Source: Zygnema circumcarinatum SAG 698-1b
Lineage: Eukaryota; Plantae; Zygnematophyceae
Direction: 5' to 3'
Assembly: GCA_037447605.1 (NCBI GenBank)
Contig: CM074819.1
Coordinates: forward strand, 2,221,580-2,285,579
DNA: 64,000 nt
The translations under genes and the position numbers were made by a program. How positions within the stretch are numbered: position 1 is the stretch's first letter; each line of letters opens with the position of its first letter. The notes under the pieces are model-generated. The model saw only the letters and a list, made by a program, of their open reading frames with translations. It had not been told where the DNA came from and ran no database searches. Positions 1 through 63,724 of the stretch are shown here, one piece after another.

Positions 1-480
1 CCTCCTTCCTCCTCTCGCTGCCTCCTTGAAGCGTTGTTGAGCCTAGAGCCTAGGCGTAGCTTAGCTTTATTCTATTATCCTTAGGTCCTTTGCGACCAGT
101 TCCTCGTGGTTCCCCACGCTGATTTTGTCAATGTACATCTGATAGCATCGCCATCGTGAGATCAATGTTACATCTTTTGCTTTTTTAAATTGAAAATGGA
201 TATGGAGTCCTCACAACCAGGGCTTTCTGAATATCAAAGGTGACCTTAATCGGAGCATGTTTGGTACAAACTTATGTAAAGTGCCAAAAAGGAAAGTTCT
301 ACCTTGTATGGGTAAACCCGGTGTTAATGCAACAAGCTTTGACAAAATATCAATACATTCATTAAGCATTCGACAAAAAAGTGCCAAGTTTATACGAGAG
401 CACTCTAATCGACCTCTCCGACTTGATAAATTTTTCCCCACACATGATAGGTAGTGAGCCAATCACAGCTCATCATCACC

Positions 481-48381: not shown

Positions 48382-51300
48382 GCTCTCTCTCTCTCTCTCT
48401 CTCTAACCCCCAGGCTTTGTTTTGTAAAGAACCTTCTGGCCTTTTTGCTTTTGAGACATCTTATTGTTGAGGATTCGTACGGTTTTGAGGTGTAACATTG
48501 CCGGTAAGGGTGTGCGCGGAGCGCAGAGGCCCTTCCTGGGCGGCCTGGCGGTCCTGACGGAGGAGGCGAGGGCCGCGCTGGCCGCGGGCGGGCGCCTCGA
48601 GGCGCTGCTCCTCCGCCTCGCGGGGGACCCCCCCGAGGGCGACCTCCCCCGCTACCAGGTACAGGGGTACGGGCACAGGCACAGGGTACAGGCACAGCCC
48701 GCACTACTGCATGGAGCGCCCGGGGTGGGTGGCGGGCGTTCCACGGAACTGAACACAGAACTGAGGGTGGAACAGGAGGCGACAGGGAACTGAGAACAGA
48801 ACTGTGGGTGGAACAGGTGGCGGAGGCGACAGGGAACATCGCGATGCGGTGGGTGAGCAGTCAGGTGGCGGTGATGGGGGAGTGGATCGACCGCTCCTTC
48901 ACGGCCGAGGTGCTGTGGGCTCCACCTCTCTGCTCGTTGAGTCAACTATACCATTGGTTAGGAGATGATTTGATTGTCCTTTTGAAGGGTTGACCTGTGT
49001 AGTTAAGAATGCCAAAGAAGGTTTGTAATTGCGGCAGGGGTTAAGGAACGTAGGAGACGTGACGATGAAGGAATCGGAAGGCAAGGCGACCTATGGAGAA
49101 TCTTTGTACTTGCTGATGTTAAGCTTTATGAATGGAGGTCGATCTAATGCGTTGGGGGAAGTGGGAAGAGATGGATTGGAAGCAGAAGTGGGAGGTGGTG
49201 TCACAGACACATCGGTACGGCCATTCTGTGGTGGATACGTTTCGAATCATCGAAGATGTCAGTTCCGTAAAATCCCTTCCAAATCCAAATCATGTGTCTG
49301 CTGTACTTACTTGCTTGCAGTATGGATTTTATGGACGTAAAGACTTCAGATTGTGGGATTTAGGAATTTAGGATGAAAGGGAATTTGTATGGGAGGTGAG
49401 GTGCGAGTCCGACAGAGGAGAGGGTTTGTCGAGTTGACCCTCAATGTTCTGTTGGAAATTCTGAAGGCTTTAGCGCTGATCGAAGCCTGAAATTTAAAAA
49501 ATTCAGCATCTTATCTCATAGTTGATGACATTGCATGAAAGTCACTCTCTGCGACTTTTGGAAACCTCAATGTTTGACAAATATGGCGCTTTGTCTAAAG
49601 CCCATAAGCCATTTTTCTTGGACTGAGGCAGATCTGACTAACTTTTCCATTGAACTTCTCTCGTCCTGCATTGACAAATTCCCAGGCCACGAAGCTAAGT
49701 TGGTTTTCCTTTTAGGTTTTTCCATCACATTCACTACTTCCCACCCACTTCAATGTTCGCTTCTTTCAAAATCGATTGAAGCACACGTGGTTTCTCTGTT
49801 GTGCATATGTTCAGACATTGGAGCATTTCTTTGACTTGGGCGTTCCGATCCGCTTGACCCTCATGAAGGCTCTCGCGACTGGAATCGACTCCTGCTTGCA
49901 TCACTATGTGACACGACTCATGAACCAGCTCGGTATGCCCCCCTTCCTCATAGACCCTATGCCACGTGTCCCTCCTGACAGAAGTCCCTTTAATAGAAAG
50001 AAAAGTAAACGAACTTCAACAGCAAACAGTAGACTCTCCAAAACTCTCCAAAACTCCCCAAAATTCTCCAAAACTAGTTTTTGCAGAGTCTACAGGGTTT
50101 TAGGGTGTTTTCTGTAGTTTTTTGCAGAGTTTACAGGGTTTTAGGGAGAAACCCTAAAAACTCTACTGAACTGTCCAAAACTCTCCAAAACTCTTCTTAA
50201 GTTTCAGTTTAACAGTAACTACTTTACTTTAACAGAAGAGTACCAAGTTCAACCGACGTGTGCGGAGAATCATAGTCGGCAAGGTGACTTGGTTTGACTT
50301 GACTCGACTTTACTTGAGTTGACTTGAGTTGACTTGAGTTGACCATGCATGCATGCGCAAAGGCGGGCGGGCGAGCAGGCCCGAAGGCCGAGCTGACGCC
50401 CCCCGCGCCCCCGCTGACGCGCTTCAAGGTCGACGTGGCGCAGCGCGCGGCCGCCAGGGCCCGGAACCCCGCGCGCCCATTGGTCGAGGCCCGCACCGCT
50501 GACGTCAGCGCCCTCACCACCAGGGGCCTCTGCGTGCGCCTGAACACCCTCCAGGTGCGACCGACCATGGACCGACCTGCCGCTGATATCGAGGAATATC
50601 GACTATTGTTTTGTTTCAAACGAGGAGGACTCTGAGATTGTGTGCGTTTTTGGAGGGTGTTGAAGGTCGGATATGCCGATGGCTGACGGAGAGAATGGGG
50701 CTGTTCCGGCTGTTGTGCAGTTCATGGCGGAGCAGATGGCGGCTTTGGAGGATGGCATTCGAGAACGTTGGCAAGGTAAGTGCAAGAAAGGAGACATGTC
50801 ATCGCACGGTTTCAGTTTCACGCGAACCTTATAGATGCACATGGCGAACTTCAGGCTTCGCAATTGGATCATCCTTTCCCATTTCTTGTGACTCCGGACT
50901 GTCTCCGTCACTCTTGTTCAACCTCTCGCTCACATTCTTGTCACTCTCGTTTGCTTTTGGACACGGTCTCTCTCTCGCTCACACACACACACACTCTCTC
51001 TCCCTCCCTGTCTCTCTCCTGCAGCGAAGCGTGCTGTGGAGGAGACCCTCCAGCGGCGCAGCGTGAAGGGAGACGAGCTGGCGGGGGCGTTGGACCTCTC
51101 GAGGAGGGCGGTCAGCGCAGCGATCGACAAGGCCTGCGACTTTACAGGTGGGGTAGAACCGCTGCTTCACCCCCGATTCGCATATCTTGTATTCAAATCC
51201 GCATTTTGAAAAGAAGCGTAGTGCATCTCTCAGTTCCGAATTCCGTTGAGAATAATCACTGCAGAACCGTTCTATGCTGCAATGATTGGGCTTTGTTCTT

Positions 51301-52569
51301 GATACAGTTATCAGCTGTTTCAGTTATTTGGGTGCAAATGGGGTTTCCAGGAACCAAGATTGTTTTTTGGGACTTGCGAGAGCCATTCTTGGAGAAACTT
51401 TACAGCGTGAATGTTGCCTCCGCTAGGATTGGTCCAGTGCTGGACAGGCTTGACCCGGTAGGCCCCTTTACTGCCAATATTGGCATGGAAAAGGGCTTAA
51501 GCTTTTGGGTATATTATTCAGAGGTGTTTGCACAGCTACTGGTTTTACATACTTCAGCTGTGCTAATTCTAGGATGATTTTACGGTTTCTATATGTTTGG
51601 AGGTTTTTGTTGGGCGGTTTCTGTAATCCATCGATCTAATGATCAGTAACTTTTTATGAGTTCCCGTTCTCTTTGAGCAGGTCCTGGGGGAGCTGTGTGA
51701 AGTCATCACAGAGCATCTACGTGACAGGGTCGTCCTCGGCCTCCTTCAAGCGTGCCTTGTCAGTTTTTCCTTTTCCCGTTATGTTCCTCGTCGATGTTCC
51801 TATTTCCTTGTCTCGTTTGTGGAAAGAGATAGGGCACTGGGAGGTGGGAAGGGGGAGGGCCCTTATTTTTGAGGTTGGGGTCCATGGGATTGCGGGCGGG
51901 TCTGAACAGGACGGCCTTCATCGAGTGCTTTTGGACGGAGGCCCTGCTCGAGCCTTTGCGAAGGATGATGCGGAGATGCTGGAAGATGATGTGCACGCTC
52001 TCAAGGTGCGGCTGGGAGTGAAGTGATGCAGAGATGTTCCTGGGAAGATATCATGCAGCAAAGTTCAGTCTTGTTGGTATAGAGAGCTCCTGGAATCTGA
52101 GCTCTGCCCTCCCCTTTTTCCTGCAGGATTTCTTCATAGCAGGAGGAGACGGCCTCCCCAGAACAGTGGTGGAGAACACAGCGGCTCCCGTGCAGCAAAT
52201 CCTCAACCTCTATTCTCTGGAAGTGGGTCCTCGCTCCCCCTCTCTAACAGTTTCCCCCCCCCCCTCTCCCCTCTCTCCTACATCAGGATGTTGACGTAAC
52301 GAGGTTCATCTTGCCCGTTCTGCCTCTCCCAAACCTCTTCGTATGTTTGCAAGGTACTCCCTCTGACTGCCCTGCCCTGTAAGTCGCAGACTTCCACCTT
52401 GATCGACTGCTTCAACCAGGCGAGCGGAGTGAGTGCGGGCCCGACCGCTGCCAGGCCGCGAATGGCGACCGACTCGGAGACGCTCTTGAGAGTGCTCTGC
52501 CACCGCGCAGACCGCGACGCCTCCAAGTTTTTGAAGAAGCACTTCAGACTGCCCAAAGTGGTGACATGA
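43387..52569 (+). CDS. PATROL1: Munc13-like DUF810 protein, PATROL1 homolog
   Basis: More than 20 exons with GT-AG borders. Motifs include MLQRYRRDRKELLEFV...KKVVLPPGAVSIDDVDL, EDDLRACAYELLLAC, LLVPLELL, HWADGYHLN, WADCRLRDYH, TKIVFWDLREPF, RVLLDGGPARAF and TLLRVLCHRADRDASKFLKKHFRLPK. Stop at 52567-52569. Confidence 0.93.
47298..48266. repeat. Tandem duplication with a 483-bp period, containing one PATROL1 exon per copy
   Basis: ORFs 47388-47639 and 47871-48122 are identical. The duplicated exons are 47581-47757 and 48064-48240. Units are bounded by CT tracts. Confidence 0.95.
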
Positions 52570-53441: not shown

Positions 53442-56380
53442 TCACGGACCCGCATAAATCCGCCGCTGGTTGAGCTCCTGCACAGGTCTCTGCAGGCGGG
53501 GGGTCACACAGAACACTCGGTGCAGATTAGCATTTACATGATGCATGTATCCGAAAGGTGAGTGAAGTGTCTGCGGAGATATGATAAAGGCAGACGCTAC
53601 GAACGGGATATGCCAAAAGTATTAGAACAGAACAGAATTCAACCCCCAGAAGCTACATAACCTGAAAAGGTAATCAAAGTCAGGGAACAATGTGAAGGGC
53701 TTTACTGAGTTCATGGCGAGGGTAACGCCGTCGCCAACATAGTTCATGAATTCCACCACCTGCTCTCCGGGCACTCGGATGGGAGTGGCTGTAACAGCAT
53801 TGGTGAACTTATAGGTATGTCAGAAATTACTTCAAGAGAGACAAGTGAAGAATGAGGGCACGGAGCGACAGAAAGACCGGGAAGAGGGGGAGAGAGAGAG
53901 AGAGGAGAGGGGGGAAGTGGTAAGAGTGTTCTAGACAGAATATATCATGATGTACGCCACAAAAGATTTTGACTGCAATTAGAAAAGTGTGAAAAAAACA
54001 GAGGTCGGTGGAGAACCTACTCATGAGAAACCAGGCAACCCCTTCAGAGCAGGGTGGCGTGGTCAGTGATCCCGAGTAATGGACATAGGACCGCTCGCCA
54101 TTCTGGACGAAATGCAGTCAAGCACCCATTAGCTAACCCTCTATGGCTCAAACCGTAATAAACCCATTCCAGCAGGAATTTTTCTTGTAGAATGATGGGA
54201 CAGGAGAGGAGAGAGTTCAATAGATAGCTAAGGTTCCACGTTTCAGATCATCTTGAGTTGAGGTCTGAATTTCTTTTGGTTTGAGATAGGAAGGAGCGAA
54301 AGGGAAGGTTAATCTGGAGAAATCAAGAAGTGGAGCATACGTACCTCTTGGTCCGGCTTTGGCAGCAATACAGTCGGGTTGATCTCCAAAGTAAAGCAGA
54401 CTTGGCGTTCTCCGGTGGCACCGCTTCCATTAGGGAAACACTCGGTTGGAGCCGGACTGAGGCCAACCTCCACACTGTATGTGTTAGTCACCGTACAATT
54501 GACGATGGGATTTTCTATGGGACAGCAAGGTTCACAGATAGGCAGCCCTATATAGGAGCAGCAAGAAAGAGCTGCCAGAGACAGACAATTTGAAAGTGCT
54601 GCACTCATCAAAAGCTGATAGGAAGTAAGGTAAACGTTTGTGGTTCGTGTGTCCCTCACACCTCTTGGCTCCTCGTTCATCCGGAGCGAAGTCGAGGGCT
54701 GCTTGCAGACACAAGTTACGGGGTGCCGTGGGCTGTGCTTCTATCATCACTCTGCGTCAGCCATGGCAGGCTCTTCCTGTTTAGCTTTTTAAGCAAAAAC
54801 CGAGTCCACTGAAACCCAATGTGCAAACTCCTCCACTGCCGAATTTCATGTAATAGTGATTCTGCAGCATGTACAGTAGCCATGTATCTAACAACTACTC
54901 TTGCACTCATCACTATCTCTTGCAGCTTTAGGGTTCAATTCGCAACCCTTGCATGCATCGGGCTGCTCGAAGGCATGGCTTACCCAACGACTGCCAGGCC
55001 CTTTTCGTCTCCTGCAGCAACCCCAACAAATGAAGTGCTTATTAATAAAACCATCTCAACTGCTCCCTTAAGCTCAGATTAAGGGACCACTTTCACATAG
55101 TACGCCTCTCCTTTAATCAGTTGCACTTGCCTTTACCTTTAGTTTTATCCTTTACTTTACATTGAACATCACGTCACCTCATATGCTCCTAACATTTTCA
55201 GCCTAGCACATCTTGCATGCGCATTATTGCCCCGATTAGAGGAGAATGTGAAGCGAAAAGCTGGGCGGGAAACAAGCTCACTGTGCACAAGGTGAACCTC
55301 CATGGCAGTCCGCATTCCGTTAAACGAATGTTCGCTTGGTGCATGGAAATGATACTGAAGAAGCTCCAGCTTCCGATCTCCCACTAGCATGTAGTTCGCT
55401 CCGGCAGGATAGTCCACCTGCTTGGAATATCCCATATTCAGCCACAGCTTCCAAACTCTGCCTTAACTCCGTCCTAAAGAAAATGGAGACCTATGAAGCT
55501 GATCTCTCTCCCCATCATCACCGGCGAGTAAACTCACATTATAGACGCATGCATACGCATTACCACCCTTTAGAACCGCTGTCTGATGTGAGCTAGTCAT
55601 GCCCCACAATCTGAAGCCTACATCGTCTTCACATACTCCTTTATATAGCCAATCATTGTCGGCCCCATCATCACACTATTTGGCATCACTGTCCTCAGCA
55701 TCATCCCTCGATCGTCATAACCGCACACCATCACCACCACCACAACCACCACCACTAGCATCACCATGAAGAAGTTCGAGGACTGCAGATCTGAACCAGG
55801 CACTGCGGAGTGGAAGCAATGCAGCATTGCCGGGGGGAAGGGAGGGGAGGGGAACCTGCATGGTGCCATGGCCTGTGTTCAAGAAGCTGGGAGGCGACCG
55901 ATTGTAGTTAAACTGAATCCCGCCAAGGTAGGCATTGGTGACGAGGGAGGGAGAGCCAACTGGAATGTCAATAGGAGACTGCGTGGTTCCTGCGGCGCAC
56001 AAGCTGTTCCATTGAGGAGGTCCAGAGAGACTTCCGTAGCTCCACTCATTCGCCATGGCGATCGATCCCTTCTCCCGACACACCGGGCAGGCAGCCATGG
56101 CCATTCCTGTAGCTCCACCAATCAGAAGCTTCCTCCTTGAGCCAGAGGGATTCACCAATGGCTGCCGCCTCTGTTCCCTCTCCTTCTCCTGTTCAGCAGG
56201 AGGGACGCTGCTGTCAGCTCGGGGAGCAACCATGCCCACGATAGCCCGACTCGAGCGGCCATTTCTGGGGAGCTTCATGTTGGGAGTGAGAGAGGACCCA
56301 TGGCTTCCCAAAGGCTTTCCAGAAGCCTCCCGTGTCCAGCATGCCCGCAGATGCGCTGCATTGCTGCTGCAGGCCGCCAT
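53442..56380 (-). CDS. CAH3: Alpha-carbonic anhydrase, thylakoid-lumen type (Chlamydomonas CAH3-like)
   Basis: Exons 56380-55856, 55417-55282, 55011-54984, 54751-54662, 54456-54345, 54102-54021, 53788-53706 and 53489-53442 (1104 nt, 367 aa). Transit peptide plus twin-Arg SRRKLL. Motifs WSYG..GPPQW, QSPIDIP, LNTGHGTMQV, Zn ligands YHFHAPSEH and EVHLVH, GSLTTPPCSEGV, and NSRPVQELN. Confidence 0.93.
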
Positions 56381-56466: not shown

Positions 56467-56559
56467 GTACAGTGTGTACGGAGATATTCGTACAGCCGAT
56501 TCTGTTCTGTCGGCCGAACCTATCGTACACCTTCGGTTGAAAAAGTACTGGTTTCGTAC
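56467..56559. promoter_or_regulatory. Cluster of six GTAC cores upstream of the carbonic anhydrase
   Basis: GTAC at 56467, 56476, 56490, 56525, 56545 and 56556, 87-179 bp upstream of the ATG at 56380. Confidence 0.45.
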
Positions 56560-57838
56560 GAATATCGAATTCACATACGGACGGAAGAGCTGCCATGCTG
56601 GAAAGTTAAAGCTGACGTGGCACGCTCTGAAGCCGTCAATTTCGGATTGGGCGGACGGGCGGTAAAGTGAGCGGGCAGAAAAAAATCCAGTCCGGGCAGG
56701 AGGGTCGGAGAAGCCAAGACACTGCATTATCGGACGAAGGCGAATGAGGCAGTGTCACGTGGACGCATCTTGCGTCGGATTGGCGCGATTGTTTTTTGAG
56801 CCTGCCCAAGAAAGTCGTTCCGAAGTGCGTCAGCCATTGGGAGCGCGGCACGTTGGCATTATCCTGATCGCGTGCGCCAGTCAGCAAACACTAACTGGAA
56901 CTATGCGCAGGGAGCGGCGTGCCGACCGCGACCCTGAACGGTCGTCAGTGGCCCTTCACGAGTCGGTGGTGATGGTGTTGGTGTTGTTATTGATGTTGTT
57001 GTTGATGCTGTTGTTGAACAACATCAAGACTAACTACCCCTTGTTGATGTTGTTAATGTTGTTCGATTCTTAGTGGTTTGCTGCTGTAGCTTTGTCAAGG
57101 GACTCAAGCGGCTCTAGCCCTCCACAGGTCCAAGGCCTGGTTGTGCAACAACTCACACATGACATGATCCATGTTGTGTGGAGACTTGGGCCCATCAAGA
57201 ACAAGAGCTGCTGTTTGGCTGCGAGGACGGCTCCGCCCTCCGCCCCAACAACGAGCCATTCACCGCCGACAGACTCAGAGACAGAGGACGAGGGCGAGCA
57301 AGCGGAGGGATTGCGCGACGCTAGAACGTTATCAATCAATCTTGTTAAAAGCAAAATTGCACTCACTCCCTAAATTCACAAGTCGTCCTATCATCACTTC
57401 GAGCGTATACCAACAATAATACTACTACTACTGCTGCTGCAGCACTACTCCTCCCTCCCCTGCCATGCCACCAGTCCGACACCCCCCGCTCCGGCCCCTC
57501 CCCCCCCTAACTTTTGAGGGCACATAGCCTTGTGCAGCATACCCCTTTCCCCTCCCTCCCTTCCTACGCCTGCCTGCCCCAGACCCTACCACCCAAACTC
57601 TACCGCCAGCTCATTGTGTACAAGAGGAGAGAGCTACGGCAGCTCCGCTTCGGAACTCGAACTGCTCACACAGGCTGTGGGTTCATTCTGCATTCATTTA
57701 CATGAGCAGCAGTGGCAAGCAGTGTGATGATGATGATGATGGGCCGACCGACCGTTGCAGCAGCTTGCACCGCCGCATGTCGCAGCCCCCCCTCGCTAAA
57801 TAGATGATGATGATGATGATGCCCCTCCTCTCCCCTCT

Positions 57839-60800
57839 CTACTCCGCCATGGCGGCCGCCTCCAGCAGGGTGTTGCAGAACTTGTCCGTTCTGGCGGAGC
57901 GCAGGCCCGAGGGCACGGTCTGGCAGAACTCCTCCGGGGAGGTGCCCTTCACTATGGGCCCCGCCAGCAGCTCCTCCACTGCGGGGCCGCCCGCGTCCTG
58001 CTCCGTCAGGGTTTGGCCCGCCTGTCCCTGACTCATAGCGCCAATCTGCAGGGAAGGGAAAGGGAGGGAAGGGAAGGGAGGGAGGGAGGGAGGGAGGGAG
58101 GGAGGGAGAGAGTAAGGCGAAGGGTTGGAGAACATAACTTATACCTCAAGCAGAGGTGGCGAGAGGGGTGTTAAGGGAGTGAGGGAAAGAGAGGTAGCAG
58201 GTAGTAGTAGTGTGCATGCATACCACATTAGGGTTTCCTGCCCCGCCGGTGGAGAAGAGCGACATGAGCGTGAAGGGCACGGCCGCAGCGCCGAGCGCCC
58301 CGAGGACCAAGTTCTGAAGGAAGGCCGTCTGCGCGTCCGCCTCCCCTGAAACGGCGACGGCGGTCCCCGATGCGGTCATGGACTGGGTCATGGAGGTCAT
58401 CTGCGACTTCATTTGCGTCTCCATCTCCTGCACGCCCCCGCCCTTCTACACACGTACAGGCGCCTGTCAGGACCACTTCTTCCAACTCCTCGCAGTGCTT
58501 TGGAGGGTCCGTGAGGTCTGGACATGCAAGTGTTCAGAGGTCACAAATTCCCATGTCAATGAAGCAGGCGAAGCGTGTGATATCACGCATCTAATAAAAT
58601 GCACTCACCGCAACAAACATGCTCTTCTCGATGTCGTTCCAATGGCGCGGCTTCTTCCCTGCCGCCTGCAGGGCCTGCTCGAGCTCAGAAGCCAAACGGT
58701 CGGCTCTGATCTGTGTGTCCTTCAGCTCTGCTGCCATCTTCACTGCCTCCTTCCTACAAATCGCAGCACATAATCAATCAATCAATCAGACAAGCCTAAA
58801 ACTTTTAAGATTCTCACAAAAGCTAAACATTCAGTTCAGCTGCCTGTCATCTCAAGTTTCTTCCTCTCTTCTTACCTGAGCTTCTTGGTGGTTTCATCTG
58901 CTTCCATTGCGATCTTCAGCACTCCCGAACCGTCTTCGAGCGCCGCCATAAGCTTCCCCTCCCTCTCCTTCACCATCTGCAGCTCCTCCTCCAACTCCAT
59001 GGATGACAACTCGAACGCCGCCACCTTCTCGCGATACTTGCTTGCCTGCGCATAAGCGACCTCCTCCTTCCTCTCCAGGGCCTCCACCTTCTTCTGCAGC
59101 AGCTTCACCTGCTCCTGTGCATCCGCCGCCGCCTGCTTCGCCGCCGCTTCCTTCTCCTTCAAACTCTCAATGTGGCGATAGAAGAAGTGCACTCGCTCGC
59201 CTGCACAGCCCCATTCCTCCCCTCCTGCCAACCATCAGTCCCCCACCACAAAGAGACATGCATGGAACTGTCGCAGGCCACGGAGATCACAGTTATCGCA
59301 CGCACACGGGAGGGGGGGCACACATACGCACGCACACTCGGACACACTCGCGGGGGCAGATATCTGGCTGAAACCAATATTTCATTTCTTGGGTGAGATC
59401 TGTACATTTATACACCTTCCATATAGGTTACTTCCCCGTCCCTAGAAACCCTATCCCTGCTCCTTAAACGCGAACATATACAATAAGGGGGCTCTACCGC
59501 AGCAGGCGCGGGGCTGCTACCACCAGAGTCCTCCCTAGAACACTTCCCAACACAGCCTTCGCCATCTGAACCTGCATTTGCCGAATGGCTGCTGTCCAAT
59601 AGGGAGCCATCTGCTTCTCAGCTTTACGCTTCAGATCATTCTTAATCTTTGTGAAATTGGGAGCACCTGCAGCCTTTGCAGCTTCGATGGCTGCCATCTC
59701 CTTCACCTCCAGCTTTGCCACCTGACTCGACAGGTTCGTTATCTTCTGATCTGCCTCCGCCGCTGCCTTGTCTGCTGCCGCCAACTTCTCCCGCAGCTCC
59801 GAAACCTGCAGAGTGAAGGTGCGGATGCGTGCATCTGTGGCCACCTTCGACTTCTCCTCCCTCTCCTTCAGCATCTCCATGCGTCGCTGGAAAAACTGCA
59901 CCTGCTCCTTGGCGGTAGAGGCCTGCTCGAGGGACTTGGAGGAAATCTTCTTCGCTGCCTCCACCTCTGCACTCATCTCCTTCACCACTGCCGCAGTGCG
60001 TTCCGCAATCTCCCTCTGTGCCTTTCCTACCACCCTAGCTTCGAAGGCCGCCATTCTCTCCTCCGCCTGCTTCGTCGCCTTCTCCTCCTTCTCCTTCAGC
60101 AGCTCTATGCGGCGAAGGAAAAACTGCACCTGGTCTTGTGCATATGTTGCCGCATCCGTGGCCTTGCTCGCCTTCTTCTGAGCTGCTTCCAGCTCTGCCA
60201 GCAGCCGCTGCACCTCCGCAGTCTGCACCTTCCCTCCCTCTCAAAATAAGCATTCCAGATTGCCAAATATCACGAGTGCAAATTTTTAACAATAATAGAG
60301 ATAGGCAGCCTCTCACCTGGTCAGTGCTGGCAGTGCCTGTTGACGCAGCTGCAGTCGCAGTGTTTCCTTGCATCTGCAGCGACTGCAGCTGCTTAGAAAG
60401 CTGAGCTACCTCCGTCTTCAACAGAGCAACCTGCTCCTTCGCAGAAGCTTCCCTCCGAGCTGTCATTTCAAGCTCCTCTCCGAGCTTGGACACCTTTGCA
60501 AGTGCCTCCTGCGCCAACTCCTTTGTGGCATCCTCCCTCTCCTTCAAAGCAATAACTTGCCTGAAAAATCAGCAAGAAAACGGAGAAAACTGCTCACTCA
60601 CAAGCTCTCCGCAACTACACACTCCAACAAGCTGATTCATTGCGGAAAGGTTCGAACCTCTGGAAGAATTCAACTCGCTCTTTTGCGATTGATGCTGCGG
60701 CTGACGCGGCAGTTTCCATGCTGGATAGTTCTGTGATCTTCGATGCCAAAGTTTTCGCATCCGAAGGAGACGTGGATGCACTGGTGATCTGCAGTCAACC

Positions 60801-63724
60801 GCATCATCCAAAAATAAGCAACTTCTCTCCACACAACAAATCCATAAAACGACCACTACAAACATCACAGAAACCCACTCCTCACATTCTTCAGAAGCTC
60901 CTTCACGCGATCATTCGCAGCATCCTTCGCCCTCTGCGCCTCCTTCAAGCTCGCCTCCATGGAACTCAGCTTCGTTGCCACGAAGTCAGCCTTCGCCTTC
61001 GCCCCGTGCAACTCCTTCCTTGCCACTGCCTCTGCGTGACGGAGTTTTTCCACTTGCAGTGCGAGATCCCTTGCTTTAGAAGTTGCAGATTCCGCCGCTG
61101 CTCTCGCCTCCGCTTCCCTCTGTTCGAGCCCTCTCACTCTCTCAGTGGCGGCAGCGAGAGCCTCTCTCGCTTCGGCCGCGGACTTAGTCGCAGAGCCTTC
61201 TGAGAGTTTCAGAGTCTGCACCTGCCGGGCAAGCCCCTCTTTATCCTTCACCGCTGCATTCATAGCAAGGCGAGCCTCAGCCTCCTTGTCTTTCAGAGAT
61301 TGGAGTTGGCGGTTGAAGAATTCGAGCCGGTCCCTTGATGAGTTTGCAGCCTCCATGGCCTTCTCTGCATTCGCCTGTGGTGATTGCGGAGGATGATAGT
61401 GTGAGGAGGAGAAAGTTTGCAACCTTTGAATGAGTAAGAGGAGCAATCTTCGTAAGTGAAACTACGGTTAAAGGATGCTGTGAATCACCTTGAATGCGGC
61501 TAACTCCTCAAGCGCGCGATTCGCCTCTAGCCTTGTAACCTGTAACAGTCGAAATTAACATCACAGAACCGAACGAGTCGAAATTAGGACCTTAAATGTG
61601 ATCATTTTGAATGTTCGAATGCTTTGCTCTTTCTTTTTACTTTAAGTAGTTCTTTTAGTCCTCACTCACCCTGCTAATGGCCTCCGTGAGAGTGACATCT
61701 GTCGCCACCCCGCGATCGAAGGCTTCCGCCACAAGGAGCTGCTGGGCAGTCTGCACAGTTCAACACAGAAACATATCTCAGTAACACAGTTCGCTCCTGT
61801 GATCAGCAGCAATAGAAAGGGTCCCCCCAAAAAAATGCAGGAAATCTGACCAGCCAATCGTCTGCTGGCGTTCCTGGCTGCTTCGCTGCAACCCGATGTT
61901 GAGCAACTTCATGAGCAAGCGCGGAAACTCTCTTCAGATCTCCGGCAGCCATGCGGGTCTTGGCCTGCATTGTGGACAACAAGGGAAAAGGGTCAGAAAG
62001 ACTTTGGGGGATGATTATGGAAGTGCAGATGATGTGTGGATCAATGTGAGGAGGATACAACAGCAACAGGAGTGAAATTCACAATCAGAATCGCAATACT
62101 GTAGCATGTGAATTGATATCCCACCTCTTCCCACGATTCAAAGTGGGGCTGAGCAGCCTGATTGTTGGCACTGATGATTTCGACAGCGTCAGTGAACTCC
62201 ATCCCCTTCACAAAGGTCAGGTACCTGGAAAAAATAGAAGCACACGTTAGCCGAGATAAGGAAGAGAGAAGAGAGATGGAAAGGGGCAGAGAGCGAGAGA
62301 GGGAGAGAGAGAGAGCGAGAGAGAAGGGGGGGGGGGGCTCACCCTAGAGCCACCAATGGACTGCGGTCCACCCCCGAGGTGCAGCACACGTGCACTTTAT
62401 AGCCTAATGCCACGAGCGATGCGACAGCTCTCACAGCCTCCGGCAAAGCAGCAGCCTGTACAAAAAAAATCGCACTTTACACGTAAGGAAATGTTATCCA
62501 TAAAGCTACCAGCAGCAGCAGTTCAATCAGTCTGCCATGATCTATGTGCCAATCTGGCCCAACCGCACCTGGTCCTGGTAGTCCCCGTCCCTCATGGAGA
62601 TTCTGACGGCCATCAAACCCTTCTGGCTGGCCCTTTCCCGGAACTTTCCCCAGTCGAGGCCGAGTTTGTCACAGCCGTCTTCCGTCTGCAGACCATCAAA
62701 AGCAATTGATCAGTTTTCACTAACAGGAGTTGTTAAAAAACGGCCTCCAATGATATTCTTAACTATGTTGCAAGTACGCAGAAGTAGTCAGCGGACGACT
62801 GACCTCAAGGAAAAGGAGTGCGGTGGTCTTGGTGTTGGCGAGAAGGACATCGAGATCGCGAGGAGAGCGCGGGCACGGCCCCATGGACAGCTCCTCAGAG
62901 AGCACGCTCCATGCAGGGGGCACCGCCTGCGAAGTACCTGAACACTCCAAATGCACTCCAATTCAGAGCCTTCCCCCCGTTTCGCATATCCTTTCTAATA
63001 TCTAACCACCAAAACTCCTCTTTCTCACTTTCAGCCCCCTCCCTTTCCCTACTGTTCCAGCCTTCACCATCTCCTCTCCCTCCCTCTCGAATTCCCATTT
63101 CGTTAGCTTATCTTTCCGACACTGGCCCCCCAATCAATTTTTCCATTCCAATCCATCAACTAATTTCCCTCACAGATATTCTTCTCTCTCAGTTTCTCAG
63201 CCATTTCTTCCTTTTTAAGTCCTTCTCCCTACCACTTCCCCAACCTGTTCCATTTCCCATTCCCCTTTCCCTCCTCCCTCATTCTCTGCTCCCTTTCCCT
63301 TTCCTCTCCTCTGCATTGCCCTCCCTTGCTCCTGTGGAAGTCTCCATTGAAATTTCTACAAGTTCCCCTGCCTGTCCCTCTCCCTCCCCTTCCCCTCCCC
63401 CCTCGCACACACTCTCACTCCCCTCCCCCTTCCGAAAGCGGACAGCTGGACCGCACCCGAAGAGCGCCACGTGGCGACCCCCGTGGACGGCGCCGTGGCA
63501 ACAGCATTGGTCCTGATTGGCGCGCCTCTGCGGGCGGGCGCCTTCCCCGCGCTCCCGCGCACAAGCAGCGGTCGCTGCCGCCCGTGGGCGTGTCGCCTGC
63601 CTAGCACGGGCAGGCCCTGGATGCTGCTGCTGCTGCAGGAGGAGGAGGAGGAGGGCACACCCTTCGCCGCAGCTGTGCTTTTCTCCAGAAGCGCTACCGA
63701 CGAGCTTAGGTTTACTGCCGCCAT
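57839..63724 (-). CDS. Plastid-targeted glucan-phosphatase-like (SEX4/LSF family) DSP domain, long coiled coil and C-terminal hydrophobic anchor, about 1,100 aa
   Basis: Exons 63724-63457 (transit peptide), 62937-62804, 62685-62569, 62455-62343 (KVHVCCTSGVDRSP), 62224-62125, 61964-61851, 61750-61670, 61539-61489 and 61374-60886 are all GT-AG and phase-consistent. Further coiled-coil exons run to about 58610, then an exon with LVLGALGAAAVPFTLMSLF (about 58415-58225) and a last exon about 58045-57839. Confidence 0.85.

Follow-up and report, generated by a model that had tools for sequence, protein, structure and literature searches.

A phosphatase-like head, a long coiled coil and a probable membrane anchor in one protein of the alga Zygnema circumcarinatum: a candidate starch-membrane tether

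The stretch of DNA analyzed here (hereafter, the window) comprises 64,000 nucleotides of Zygnema circumcarinatum SAG 698-1b (GenBank assembly GCA_037447605.1, contig CM074819.1, positions 2,221,580 to 2,285,579 of the forward strand), and all positions below are counted from its first letter. Its reverse strand carries a gene for a protein that consists, in order, of a transit-peptide-like leader, a phosphatase-like head, a coiled coil of ~645 residues, one hydrophobic anchor and a 78-residue tail. This gene is referred to as the tether-candidate gene, and the next gene downstream encodes an alpha-carbonic anhydrase (CA) of the CAH3 type. Sequence comparisons place the head in an unnamed branch of the glucan-phosphatase group, and the protein as a whole may be a structural tether between membrane and starch. 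The features of the locus are collected in Table 1.

Table 1. Features of the tether-candidate gene and its surroundings, in positions of the window
Feature	Residues	Position	Strand	Remarks
Tether-candidate gene, coding span		57839..63724	(-)	16 exons, 1,098 aa; all-GT-AG model, one open frame
Exons 1-8		63724-63457, 62937-62804, 62685-62569, 62455-62343, 62224-62125, 61964-61851, 61750-61670, 61539-61489	(-)	
Exons 9-16		61374-60886, 60788-60658, 60560-60317, 60222-59667, 59200-58876, 58753-58609, 58445-58224, 58045-57839	(-)	
Intron 12		59201..59666	(-)	retained in part of the transcripts; ORF 59494-60228
N-terminal presequence	1-95	62921..63724	(-)	spans intron 1; by composition
Dual-specificity phosphatase (DSP) domain	99-230	62167..62911	(-)	exons 2-5
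Active-site loop	194-206	62357..62395	(-)	V-H-V-C-C-T-S-G-V-D-R-S-P
Helical extension	231-300	61697..62166	(-)	exons 5-7; aligns with P0231, P0229 and bacterial members
Coiled-coil region	~301-945	58642..61696	(-)	by heptad score
Repeat motif 1	340-358	61279..61335	(-)	..D-R-L-E-F-F-N-R-Q..L-K-D-K-E
Repeat motif 2	525-543	60530..60683	(-)	..E-R-V-E-F-F-Q-R-Q..L-K-E-R-E; split by intron 10
Repeat motif 3	643-661	60082..60138	(-)	..D-Q-V-Q-F-F-L-R-R..L-K-E-K-E
Repeat motif 4	719-737	59854..59910	(-)	..E-Q-V-Q-F-F-Q-R-R..L-K-E-R-E
Repeat motif 5	800-818	59145..59667	(-)	..E-R-V-H-F-F-Y-R-H..L-K-E-K-E; split by intron 12
Hydrophobic segment	995-1020	58254..58331	(-)	best 19-aa Kyte-Doolittle mean 2.0
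C-terminal tail	1021-1098	57842..58253	(-)	78 aa; Gly/Pro-rich, then helical-looking; Cys1071, Cys1087
CAH3-type alpha-CA gene		53460..56380	(-)	next gene downstream, same strand; 3' end approximate
Six GTAC cores		56467..56616		90-240 bp upstream of the CA start codon
PATROL1-like exon		50780-51574	(+)	TPR_PATROL1, E 3.4e-7

In the gene model, all 15 introns have GT-AG boundaries and the frame runs unbroken from the start ATG at 63724 to the stop at 57839-57841; the coding span given in a first-pass annotation of this DNA proved exact. Transcript evidence comes from spliced assemblies of four public runs (X1, X2, X3 and X6) belonging to three studies, in which 13 of the 15 exon joints are seen directly in contigs, at the predicted positions. 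A 3,271-nt X1 contig spans exon 1, all exons of the DSP domain and the coiled-coil exons, up to exon 15/16, and therefore the DSP domain and the coiled coil are carried by one transcript; separate transcripts were the outcome that the annotation had named as fatal to its proposal. For the remaining joints (exons 4/5 and 15/16), which are located at CCCT repeats that the mapping skips, the support is contig arithmetic: the mapped pieces of the X1 contig leave 710 nt between them, precisely the summed length of exons 2-8, and 58224 is the very position at which three contigs end. Contigs also set the acceptor of exon 15 to 58445 instead of 58427, which adds six in-frame codons and thus yields the protein of 1,098 aa. 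The tether candidate is a real, expressed nuclear gene with a single transcript.

Retention of intron 12 is observed in contigs that span 59176-59695 in X2, X3 and X6, at ~15-23% of the depth of the flanking exons, with none among the X1 contigs; coverage of intron 1 in contigs is 2-3% only. Read-through of intron 12 would stop the protein after the fourth of the five repeated motifs described below, leaving it with a different tail of 60 residues and without the anchor. Such a form could be a soluble isoform that varies with conditions.

The spliced protein was analyzed with local scripts, and Pfam and the large searches were run on single exons. Among the first 95 residues there are 12 basic and one acidic, with Ser at 19%, Ala at 17% and both together at 36%, and this leader looks, by composition only, like the plastid transit peptide that had been claimed for it. 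Starting from this compositional footing, and from a start codon that is the first ATG of the transcript contig in the region examined, it could be argued that the leader is no transit peptide and that the protein resides in another, non-plastidial membrane system. We consider this very improbable, as the composition is typical (Ser/Ala/Arg-rich and acid-poor), a relative from Auxenochlorella likewise begins with an acid-poor leader of ~75 aa, and both the domain family and the neighboring genes are plastid-related.

The long middle part of the protein has a coiled-coil heptad score of 0.678, compared with 0.460 +/- 0.013 in shuffled versions. A single Pro occurs between residues 277 and 943 (~665 residues), and the residues A/E/K/L/Q/R/M make up 65-80% of the composition. 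Fully extended, such a rod would have a computed length of ~95 nm. Pfam returns weak coiled-coil noise for these exons; apart from the DSPc match of exon 4, its scan by exon finds no domain in the protein, tail included, and in particular no carbohydrate-binding module (CBM) of family CBM48 or CBM20 in any exon. The one strongly hydrophobic stretch, at residues 995-1020, is probably a single membrane span, and this predicted anchor could have either topology, as no Lys or Arg lies within ~25 residues of either flank. The several hundred residues of coiled coil, the hydrophobic segment, the short two-Cys tail and the lack of CBM48 noted in the first-pass annotation were all borne out.

Taken by itself, exon 4 matches Pfam DSPc (PF00782) at E 6.6e-4 and has an atlas feature match of 0.92 to DSPc clusters. 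Single DSP exons, being too short, gave no useful matches to solved structures, and a word search with a 244-aa stop-free piece returned nothing within the length range searched, outside which the true protein falls. When spliced, residues 103-230 align without gaps, at 50 bits, to a local hidden Markov model (HMM) of 113 LSF1 DSP domains. A DNA pattern for the active-site loop, V-x-V-x-C-T-[S/T]-G-x-D-R-S-P, has 21 environmental matches, all in LSF1 genes. Two of these are full-length LSF1 open reading frames (ORFs; DSPc + CBM48) whose relatives are named LSF1, and the spliced head aligns with them gapless over 129 residues at 27-28% identity.

A candidate LSF1 ancestry of the head was rejected by a wider phmmer ranking and by a phylogenetic tree. 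The head scores 133, 126 and 119 bits, respectively, against P0231 (a Logan transcript), P0229 (Auxenochlorella KAL6780698) and P0240 (from a dinoflagellate transcriptome), three proteins retrieved by a profile search limited to sizes like those of SEX4 and LSF2. Its scores are 78-107 bits with bacterial proteins of 200-225 aa, versus 50-60 bits with LSF1 and 55 bits with a SEX4-like DSP + CBM48 protein (P0150). The DSP exons align in order with members of this unnamed group. The alignment with P0231 covers 325 aa at 30% identity and 171 bits and runs through the DSP domain, an extension of ~70 aa and the start of the coiled coil; chlorophyte members in general align at 30-35% identity and 113-171 bits over the DSP domain, the extension and the first ~100 coiled-coil residues. 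In a maximum-likelihood tree of 50 DSP domains, the head is sister to these three algal proteins (97/87) within a clade (100/99) that includes the bacterial proteins. LSF1 forms a clade of its own (100/99) and the SEX4-like protein also falls elsewhere, both away from the head. This tree contains no LSF2 sequence, and the head is a long branch in it, with a terminal length of 1.32 against a median of 0.22 (~6x). Four hallmarks of the clade are shared by the head: G-x-C-P-R-S-P-x-D-[ILV]-D, L-P-E-A-V-R, G-Y-L-T-F-V and D-W-x-x-A. Since the tree and the scores place the head in another clade, its LSF1-like loop is taken as convergent.

By these measures, the head belongs to a distinct, unnamed clade that combines a DSP domain with a helical extension in an LSF2-like layout, with no CBM. 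The clade occurs in chlorophytes, where the coiled-coil tails are short, and in glycogen-accumulating bacteria. Residues 1-215 of P0231 score 65 bits against LSF2, 61 against SEX4, 55 against laforin and 46 against LSF1 among solved proteins, with all others at or below 36. An AlphaFold2 model of P0231 (predicted local distance difference test 94.7, predicted template-modeling score 0.90) has two extension helices after the DSP core, and the latter score suggests that the extension packs against this core. Its best fold match is again LSF2 (E 2.7e-14, ~210-219 columns), followed by SEX4 and laforin and then by PTPMT1 and generic DSPs; matches confined to the DSP domain cover 148-170 columns, versus ~210-219 for LSF2. 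In the atlas, the nearest cluster that bears a name is 'phosphoglucan phosphatase chloroplastic-like'; the automatic name 'Laforin' is given to one member of the Auxenochlorella cluster, and 55 chlorophyte proteins of ~331 aa form a cluster that looks like the clade's own. Judged from both sequence and predicted fold, the clade is an uncharacterized fifth branch of the glucan-phosphatase group and not SEX4 or LSF1, and probably not LSF2, in the narrow sense.

These results divide the earlier description of the head as a SEX4/LSF1/LSF2-type DSP. Its glucan-phosphatase-like character holds, as P0231 matches LSF2, SEX4, laforin and LSF1 first, and a grouping with non-glucan phosphatases, the opposite outcome, is not what the scores give (65-46 bits versus <=36). 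The implied direct kinship does not hold for SEX4 and LSF1, the head lying in a separate clade (97/87, 100/99), and probably not for LSF2. The claim of a new architecture likewise needs to be narrowed. The basic plan of DSP domain, extension and coiled coil already exists in chlorophytes with a short tail, and what is new is the ~645-aa rod with its five motifs, the anchor and tail, and the degenerate loop.

Full-length bacterial members, sought in 185,579 genomes of prokaryotic species, have their main concentration in Ca. Competibacter, Ca. Contendobacter, Competibacteraceae and Defluviicoccus, with further ones in related Rhodospirillales and in sulfur bacteria. Competibacter, Contendobacter and Defluviicoccus are the standard glycogen-accumulating organisms (PMC9041414, PMC5406452). 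These proteins of 200-225 aa have an intact H-C-x-x-G-x-x-R loop, and among solved proteins the glucan phosphatases of eukaryotes come closest to them. Example loci (from the set L026-L078) are Defluviicoccus vanus NZ_CP053923 584106-600729 (L032) and one in Ca. Competibacter phosphatis (L055). No conserved operon context was found for the bacterial members: a GlgC-type gene is present in seven of 42 loci, all from related Rhodospirillales. According to a 2026 review (PMC13666283), laforin is absent from prokaryotes and no machinery for glucan phosphorylation is known in them. The bacterial DSP + extension proteins are put forward as candidates only for bacterial glucan phosphatases.

The active-site loop of the Zygnema head bears on whether it is still an enzyme. 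The CX5R core (C198-R204, at 62383-62363) is intact with Cys197 in place of the preceding His, exactly as first annotated, and Asp203 occupies X5. The HCX5R signature has a His immediately before the catalytic Cys (PMC5779698); its absence from the head bears on activity and not on membership of the fold. For the general-acid Asp, R-D-G-D of the head aligns with R-D-F-D of the family, ~30 residues upstream of the loop. Relatives within the clade have the loop V-Y-V-H-C-T-[AST]-G-[ILF]-[NGS]-R-[AS]-[TSP], and those of SEX4 and LSF2 read H-C-[TS]-A-G-[ML]-G-R-A-P. The earlier statement that LSF1 also lacks the His is confirmed by V-T-C-T-T-G-[FLY]-D-R-S-P in ~100 LSF1s, and the head fits this LSF1-type pattern, x-C-T-[ST]-G-x-D-R-S-P without the His. 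Among nine sequences compared, the other eight have an aromatic residue directly before the Cys, Tyr in one case and His in the rest; the head alone lacks it and alone has Asp in the loop, a combination seen otherwise only in LSF1 among the sequences compared. Of 30 positions invariant in eight relatives, 22 are kept, and the losses fall at functional sites. They include the D-loop Phe (D-F-D to D-G-D), the Gln of 'L-Q' and a V-loop Cys; two near-invariant residues, the His before the Cys and the Arg of 'R-P', are lost as well. Because of these losses in the loop and at functional sites, together with a branch 6x the median, any catalysis by the head is probably weak or absent, as in a pseudoenzyme. 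LSF1 itself is described as non-catalytic, a scaffold that brings beta-amylase to starch (PMC13666283).

Alternatively, the protein could be an active, membrane-anchored glucan phosphatase that dephosphorylates starch or soluble phosphoglucans, with the coiled coil and anchor serving only to hold the phosphatase in place, such as where thylakoid and starch meet while the starch sheath is remodeled. Replacement of the His before the catalytic Cys in protein tyrosine phosphatases lowers activity and does not abolish it. Cys198, Arg204 and the D-loop Asp are among the 22 invariant positions kept, all relatives have canonical loops, and the closest solved relatives are active glucan phosphatases. 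Set against this are the joint loss of the His, the D-loop Phe and the RP Arg, a branch length that suggests relaxed catalytic constraint, and an Asp at X5 that is otherwise found in the non-catalytic LSF1 (PMC13666283). On balance, an active enzyme seems rather unlikely.

The substitution also creates a vicinal Cys pair at the catalytic position, formed by Cys197 (62384-62386) and Cys198 (62381-62383). The two residues could join in a disulfide. In SEX4, disulfide formation by the catalytic Cys turns the enzyme off (PMC12892837), and a Cys197/Cys198 redox switch is conceivable by analogy.

A head without catalysis need not bind glucan. Pseudophosphatases are commonly protein adaptors, and the head could bind phosphoproteins or another protein and serve as a membrane scaffold for signaling or for thylakoid complexes. 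That the glucan-channel aromatics are not conserved and that a CBM is lacking would suit such a role, as would a clade placement drawn from sequence and fold, with no biochemically characterized member. It is harder to reconcile with the nearest characterized relatives of the clade, all of which are glucan phosphatases, with the clustering of its bacterial members in glycogen-accumulating organisms, and with LSF2, a DSP + C-terminal extension that binds starch without a CBM (PMC12892837). A purely protein-binding head is accordingly held to be quite improbable.

The rod carries a second distinctive feature, a motif repeated five times along its length: A-x-[E/D]-[R/Q]-[V/L]-x-F-F-x-R-x-[ILMV]-x-x-[LM]-K-[ED]-[KR]-E. 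Ten of the 16 Phe residues of the rod sit in the FF pairs of these motifs, and five copies of FF.R were reached in none of 20,000 shuffles. When exon 9 was compared with 1.84 billion representatives, the only relative of the rod was P0001 (locus L001), with one unrelated repeat protein as the other match. P0001 is a 208-aa ORF on a 920-nt ENA metagenome scaffold, 38% identical to the rod, and the scaffold is too short to tell whether a DSP head is present. Read from its sequence and not from a DNA alignment, the intron position after exon 9 seems to be conserved in P0001, as the similarity ends there and the ORF continues with unrelated residues. At the place that matches the motif P0001 has E-R-F-E-F-L-L-R-Y, and it scores 8.3 bits against a profile of the five repeats, versus a maximum of 4.8 in 550 shuffles. 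A scan of JGI metagenomes with a profile of exon 9 and P0001 found no relatives, and the FF.R motif is absent from the chlorophyte relatives P0231 and P0229. Derivation of the repeats from the last extension helix (R-E-T-F-Q-R-Q-I in P0231) was considered and rejected, the repeat HMM giving 0.4 and -1.0 bits, within shuffle noise.

A possible partner for the motif is suggested by the Chlorella linker protein CsLinker, in which a helix of ~10 residues binds the Rubisco large subunit. There, Phe173 dominates the hydrophobic contact and Leu174 (or Met) adds to it, Arg176 and Lys177 form two salt bridges, and Glu169 is placed for a third, with Lys94 of tobacco RbcL (PMC11570498). The spacing of these contacts, E-x-x-x-F-[L/M]-x-R-K, is matched in all five repeats as [E/D]-x-x-x-F-F-x-R-[R/Q/H], and P0001 fits it too as E-x-x-x-F-L-x-R-Y. 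At the Lys177 position, two of the five repeats have a K/R residue, Arg in both, while one has His and two have Gln. Across all six frames of the window there is no further occurrence of the pattern, which is seen 0.0055 times per shuffled rod. The likeness between motif and CsLinker is a lead and not a demonstration.

The neighboring CA gene starts at the ATG at 56380, and its first two exons were checked. Exon 1 matches PDB 4XIW at E 9.7e-13, well ahead of every other CA (2e-3 for human CA I), and exon 2 continues along the same 4XIW chain (E 8.4e-9) with an intact zinc site, H-F-H-A-P-S-E-H. The 4XIW structure is that of Chlamydomonas CAH3, an enzyme of the thylakoid lumen (PMC10814762). 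The leader of the Zygnema protein, S-R-R-K-L-L followed by a hydrophobic stretch, looks like a twin-arginine-like signal. Upstream of this gene lies the densest cluster of GTAC cores in the window, with six in 150 bp versus 0.3 expected (background 2.0 per kb); the 276 bp visible upstream of the tether-candidate ATG hold one GTAC. A PATROL1-like gene on the opposite strand, just beyond the CA gene, ends on that side the group of genes that resemble parts of a carbon-concentrating mechanism (CCM). The CAH3-type neighbor favors the tether idea and does not prove it.

A more general role for the protein would be that of a plastid coiled-coil organizer of starch granules, or of nucleoids or thylakoids, comparable to MFP1, MRC and PTST2, with no part in a CCM and with a CCM-gene neighbor by coincidence. 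An anchor, a long coiled coil and a glucan-related module do resemble the logic of MFP1 and PTST2 (PMC13167743), eukaryotic gene order is usually non-functional, and the unrelated PATROL1 gene stands directly beyond the CA gene. Such an organizer is unlikely: the exon 9 search found no sequence relation to known coiled-coil proteins, the gene shares its restriction to one lineage with the structural proteins of pyrenoids and not with the widespread MFP1, and the five-fold motif and the CAH3-type neighbor fit a CCM role better.

The reading favored here, tentatively and at somewhat less than an even chance, is that the protein is a structural tether or organizer at the interface of membrane and starch, possibly also of the Rubisco matrix, in the service of a CCM. 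The head would no longer be mainly an enzyme; like the scaffold LSF1 it would serve for binding, with alpha-glucan as the most likely ligand. The hydrophobic segment would anchor the protein in a plastid membrane, most likely the thylakoid, and the rod would hold head and anchor as much as ~95 nm apart. A partner, for which the Rubisco large subunit is the leading candidate, would dock at the five [E/D]xxxFFxR motifs. In this way, the protein would be a functional counterpart of SAGA1 and SAGA2 of Chlamydomonas and of PMST and PMTT of Chlorella.

Several observations weigh against such a tether. With regard to the head, Cys198, Arg204 and the D-loop Asp are intact at the catalytic positions, so residual or full activity is possible, and conservation is poor for the aromatics that line the glucan channel in SEX4 and LSF2 (Leu replaces Phe/Trp in the V-loop and Gly replaces Phe in the D-loop), which weakens the case for glucan binding as much as that for catalysis. 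With regard to the motifs, the two additional positions match CsLinker, once FF.R is given, at p ~0.04 when the repeats are counted as one observation, a modest level of support. A phmmer comparison of the motif window with the linker chain of 8Q05 found no match, so the likeness consists of a pattern of five positions; the motifs also lie inside a predicted heptad-repeat helix, whereas the CsLinker helices are short and flanked by disorder. The hydrophobic segment contains a Pro, in addition to the flanks free of Lys and Arg, and, in a eukaryote, the fact that two genes are neighbors says little about a common function.

A more specific form of the tether would span three compartments. The motifs would sit on the Rubisco large subunit at the CsLinker site, the head on the starch sheath and the anchor in thylakoids associated with the pyrenoid, and the two-Cys tail would reach into the lumen, close to the CAH3-type CA. 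Such an arrangement, drawn by analogy, is unlikely as a whole. If true, it would be the first structural component of a pyrenoid in the lineage that leads to land plants, and its motif a second, independently evolved one that binds the large subunit.

The structural proteins of pyrenoids are not shared from one algal lineage to another, and to our knowledge none has been described in streptophyte algae or in hornworts, which are the lineages closest to crops. Recent work on SAGA1/2 and on Chlorella predicts that tethers are particular to each lineage and consist of a glucan-binding module and repeats of a lineage-specific motif that binds Rubisco, and the Zygnema gene fits this template. It offers a concrete candidate protein and a nine-residue motif for testing, and a motif that binds the conserved large subunit, if this one does, would be useful for engineering pyrenoids into plants. 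The fifth branch of glucan phosphatases is of interest in its own right, as its bacterial members occur in glycogen-accumulating organisms, where no glucan phosphatase is known.

Compared with the other members of its clade, the Zygnema protein has a coiled coil of ~645 aa instead of ~130 aa, a degenerate loop (Cys for His, Asp at X5) and a much longer branch, and it carries the five FF.R motifs and the anchor and tail, which P0231 and P0229 lack. LSF2 (PDB 4KYQ/4KYR) is similar in having a DSP domain with C-terminal helices and no CBM, and it is the best match of the clade in both sequence and fold. It binds starch through surface sites of the DSP domain, with no need for a CBM (PMC12892837). 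In contrast, LSF2 is active, with an H-C-S-A-G-L-G-R-A-P loop, lacks a coiled coil and an anchor, and is ~23% identical by eye. LSF1 (PDB 8J5D) shares the absence of the His before the Cys, a Ser/Thr at X2 and an Asp at X5 followed by R-S-P, yet it belongs to another clade and possesses a PDZ region and a CBM48, neither of which is present here. SEX4 differs in having a CBM48 after its DSP domain and another loop, H-C-T-A-G-M-G-R-A-P. With respect to MFP1-type proteins, the exon 9 search among 1.84 billion representatives found no sequence homology between the rod and MFP1.

The closest parallels in design are found among pyrenoid proteins. The Chlamydomonas Rubisco-binding motif is defined as [D/N]-W-[R/K]-x-x-[LIVA]; it was not seen when the Zygnema protein was read by eye, and no pattern search was made. 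In the CCMs of green-algal pyrenoids, BST, CAH3 and LCIB are conserved parts of carbon delivery, while the structural parts are lineage-specific (10.64898/2026.07.17.739135). SAGA1 and SAGA2 of Chlamydomonas combine CBM20 domains and Rubisco-binding motifs with coiled-coil content, and the paper on them predicts analogous tethers in other algae (PMC13167743). Chlorella PMST combines a CBM20 with six motifs, and PMTT a transmembrane anchor with five Rubisco-binding motifs and an inactive rhodanese domain (10.64898/2026.07.17.739135). The Zygnema protein is comparable to all four in its glucan-binding or enzyme-like module, several putative docking motifs, coiled-coil content and restriction to a lineage, and to PMTT also in pairing a membrane anchor with an apparently inactivated enzyme domain. 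It shares no homology with them: their modules are CBM20 or rhodanese and not DSP, their motifs lie in disordered regions, and their binding and localization are experimental, whereas those proposed here are read from sequence. With CsLinker (PDB 8Q05), the likeness is in the spacing of key contacts, at the level of a pattern, and the Zygnema motifs are embedded in a long heptad-repeat helix. By analogy, then, the protein fits the tether design with different parts and is a member of none of the SAGA, PMST and PMTT families.

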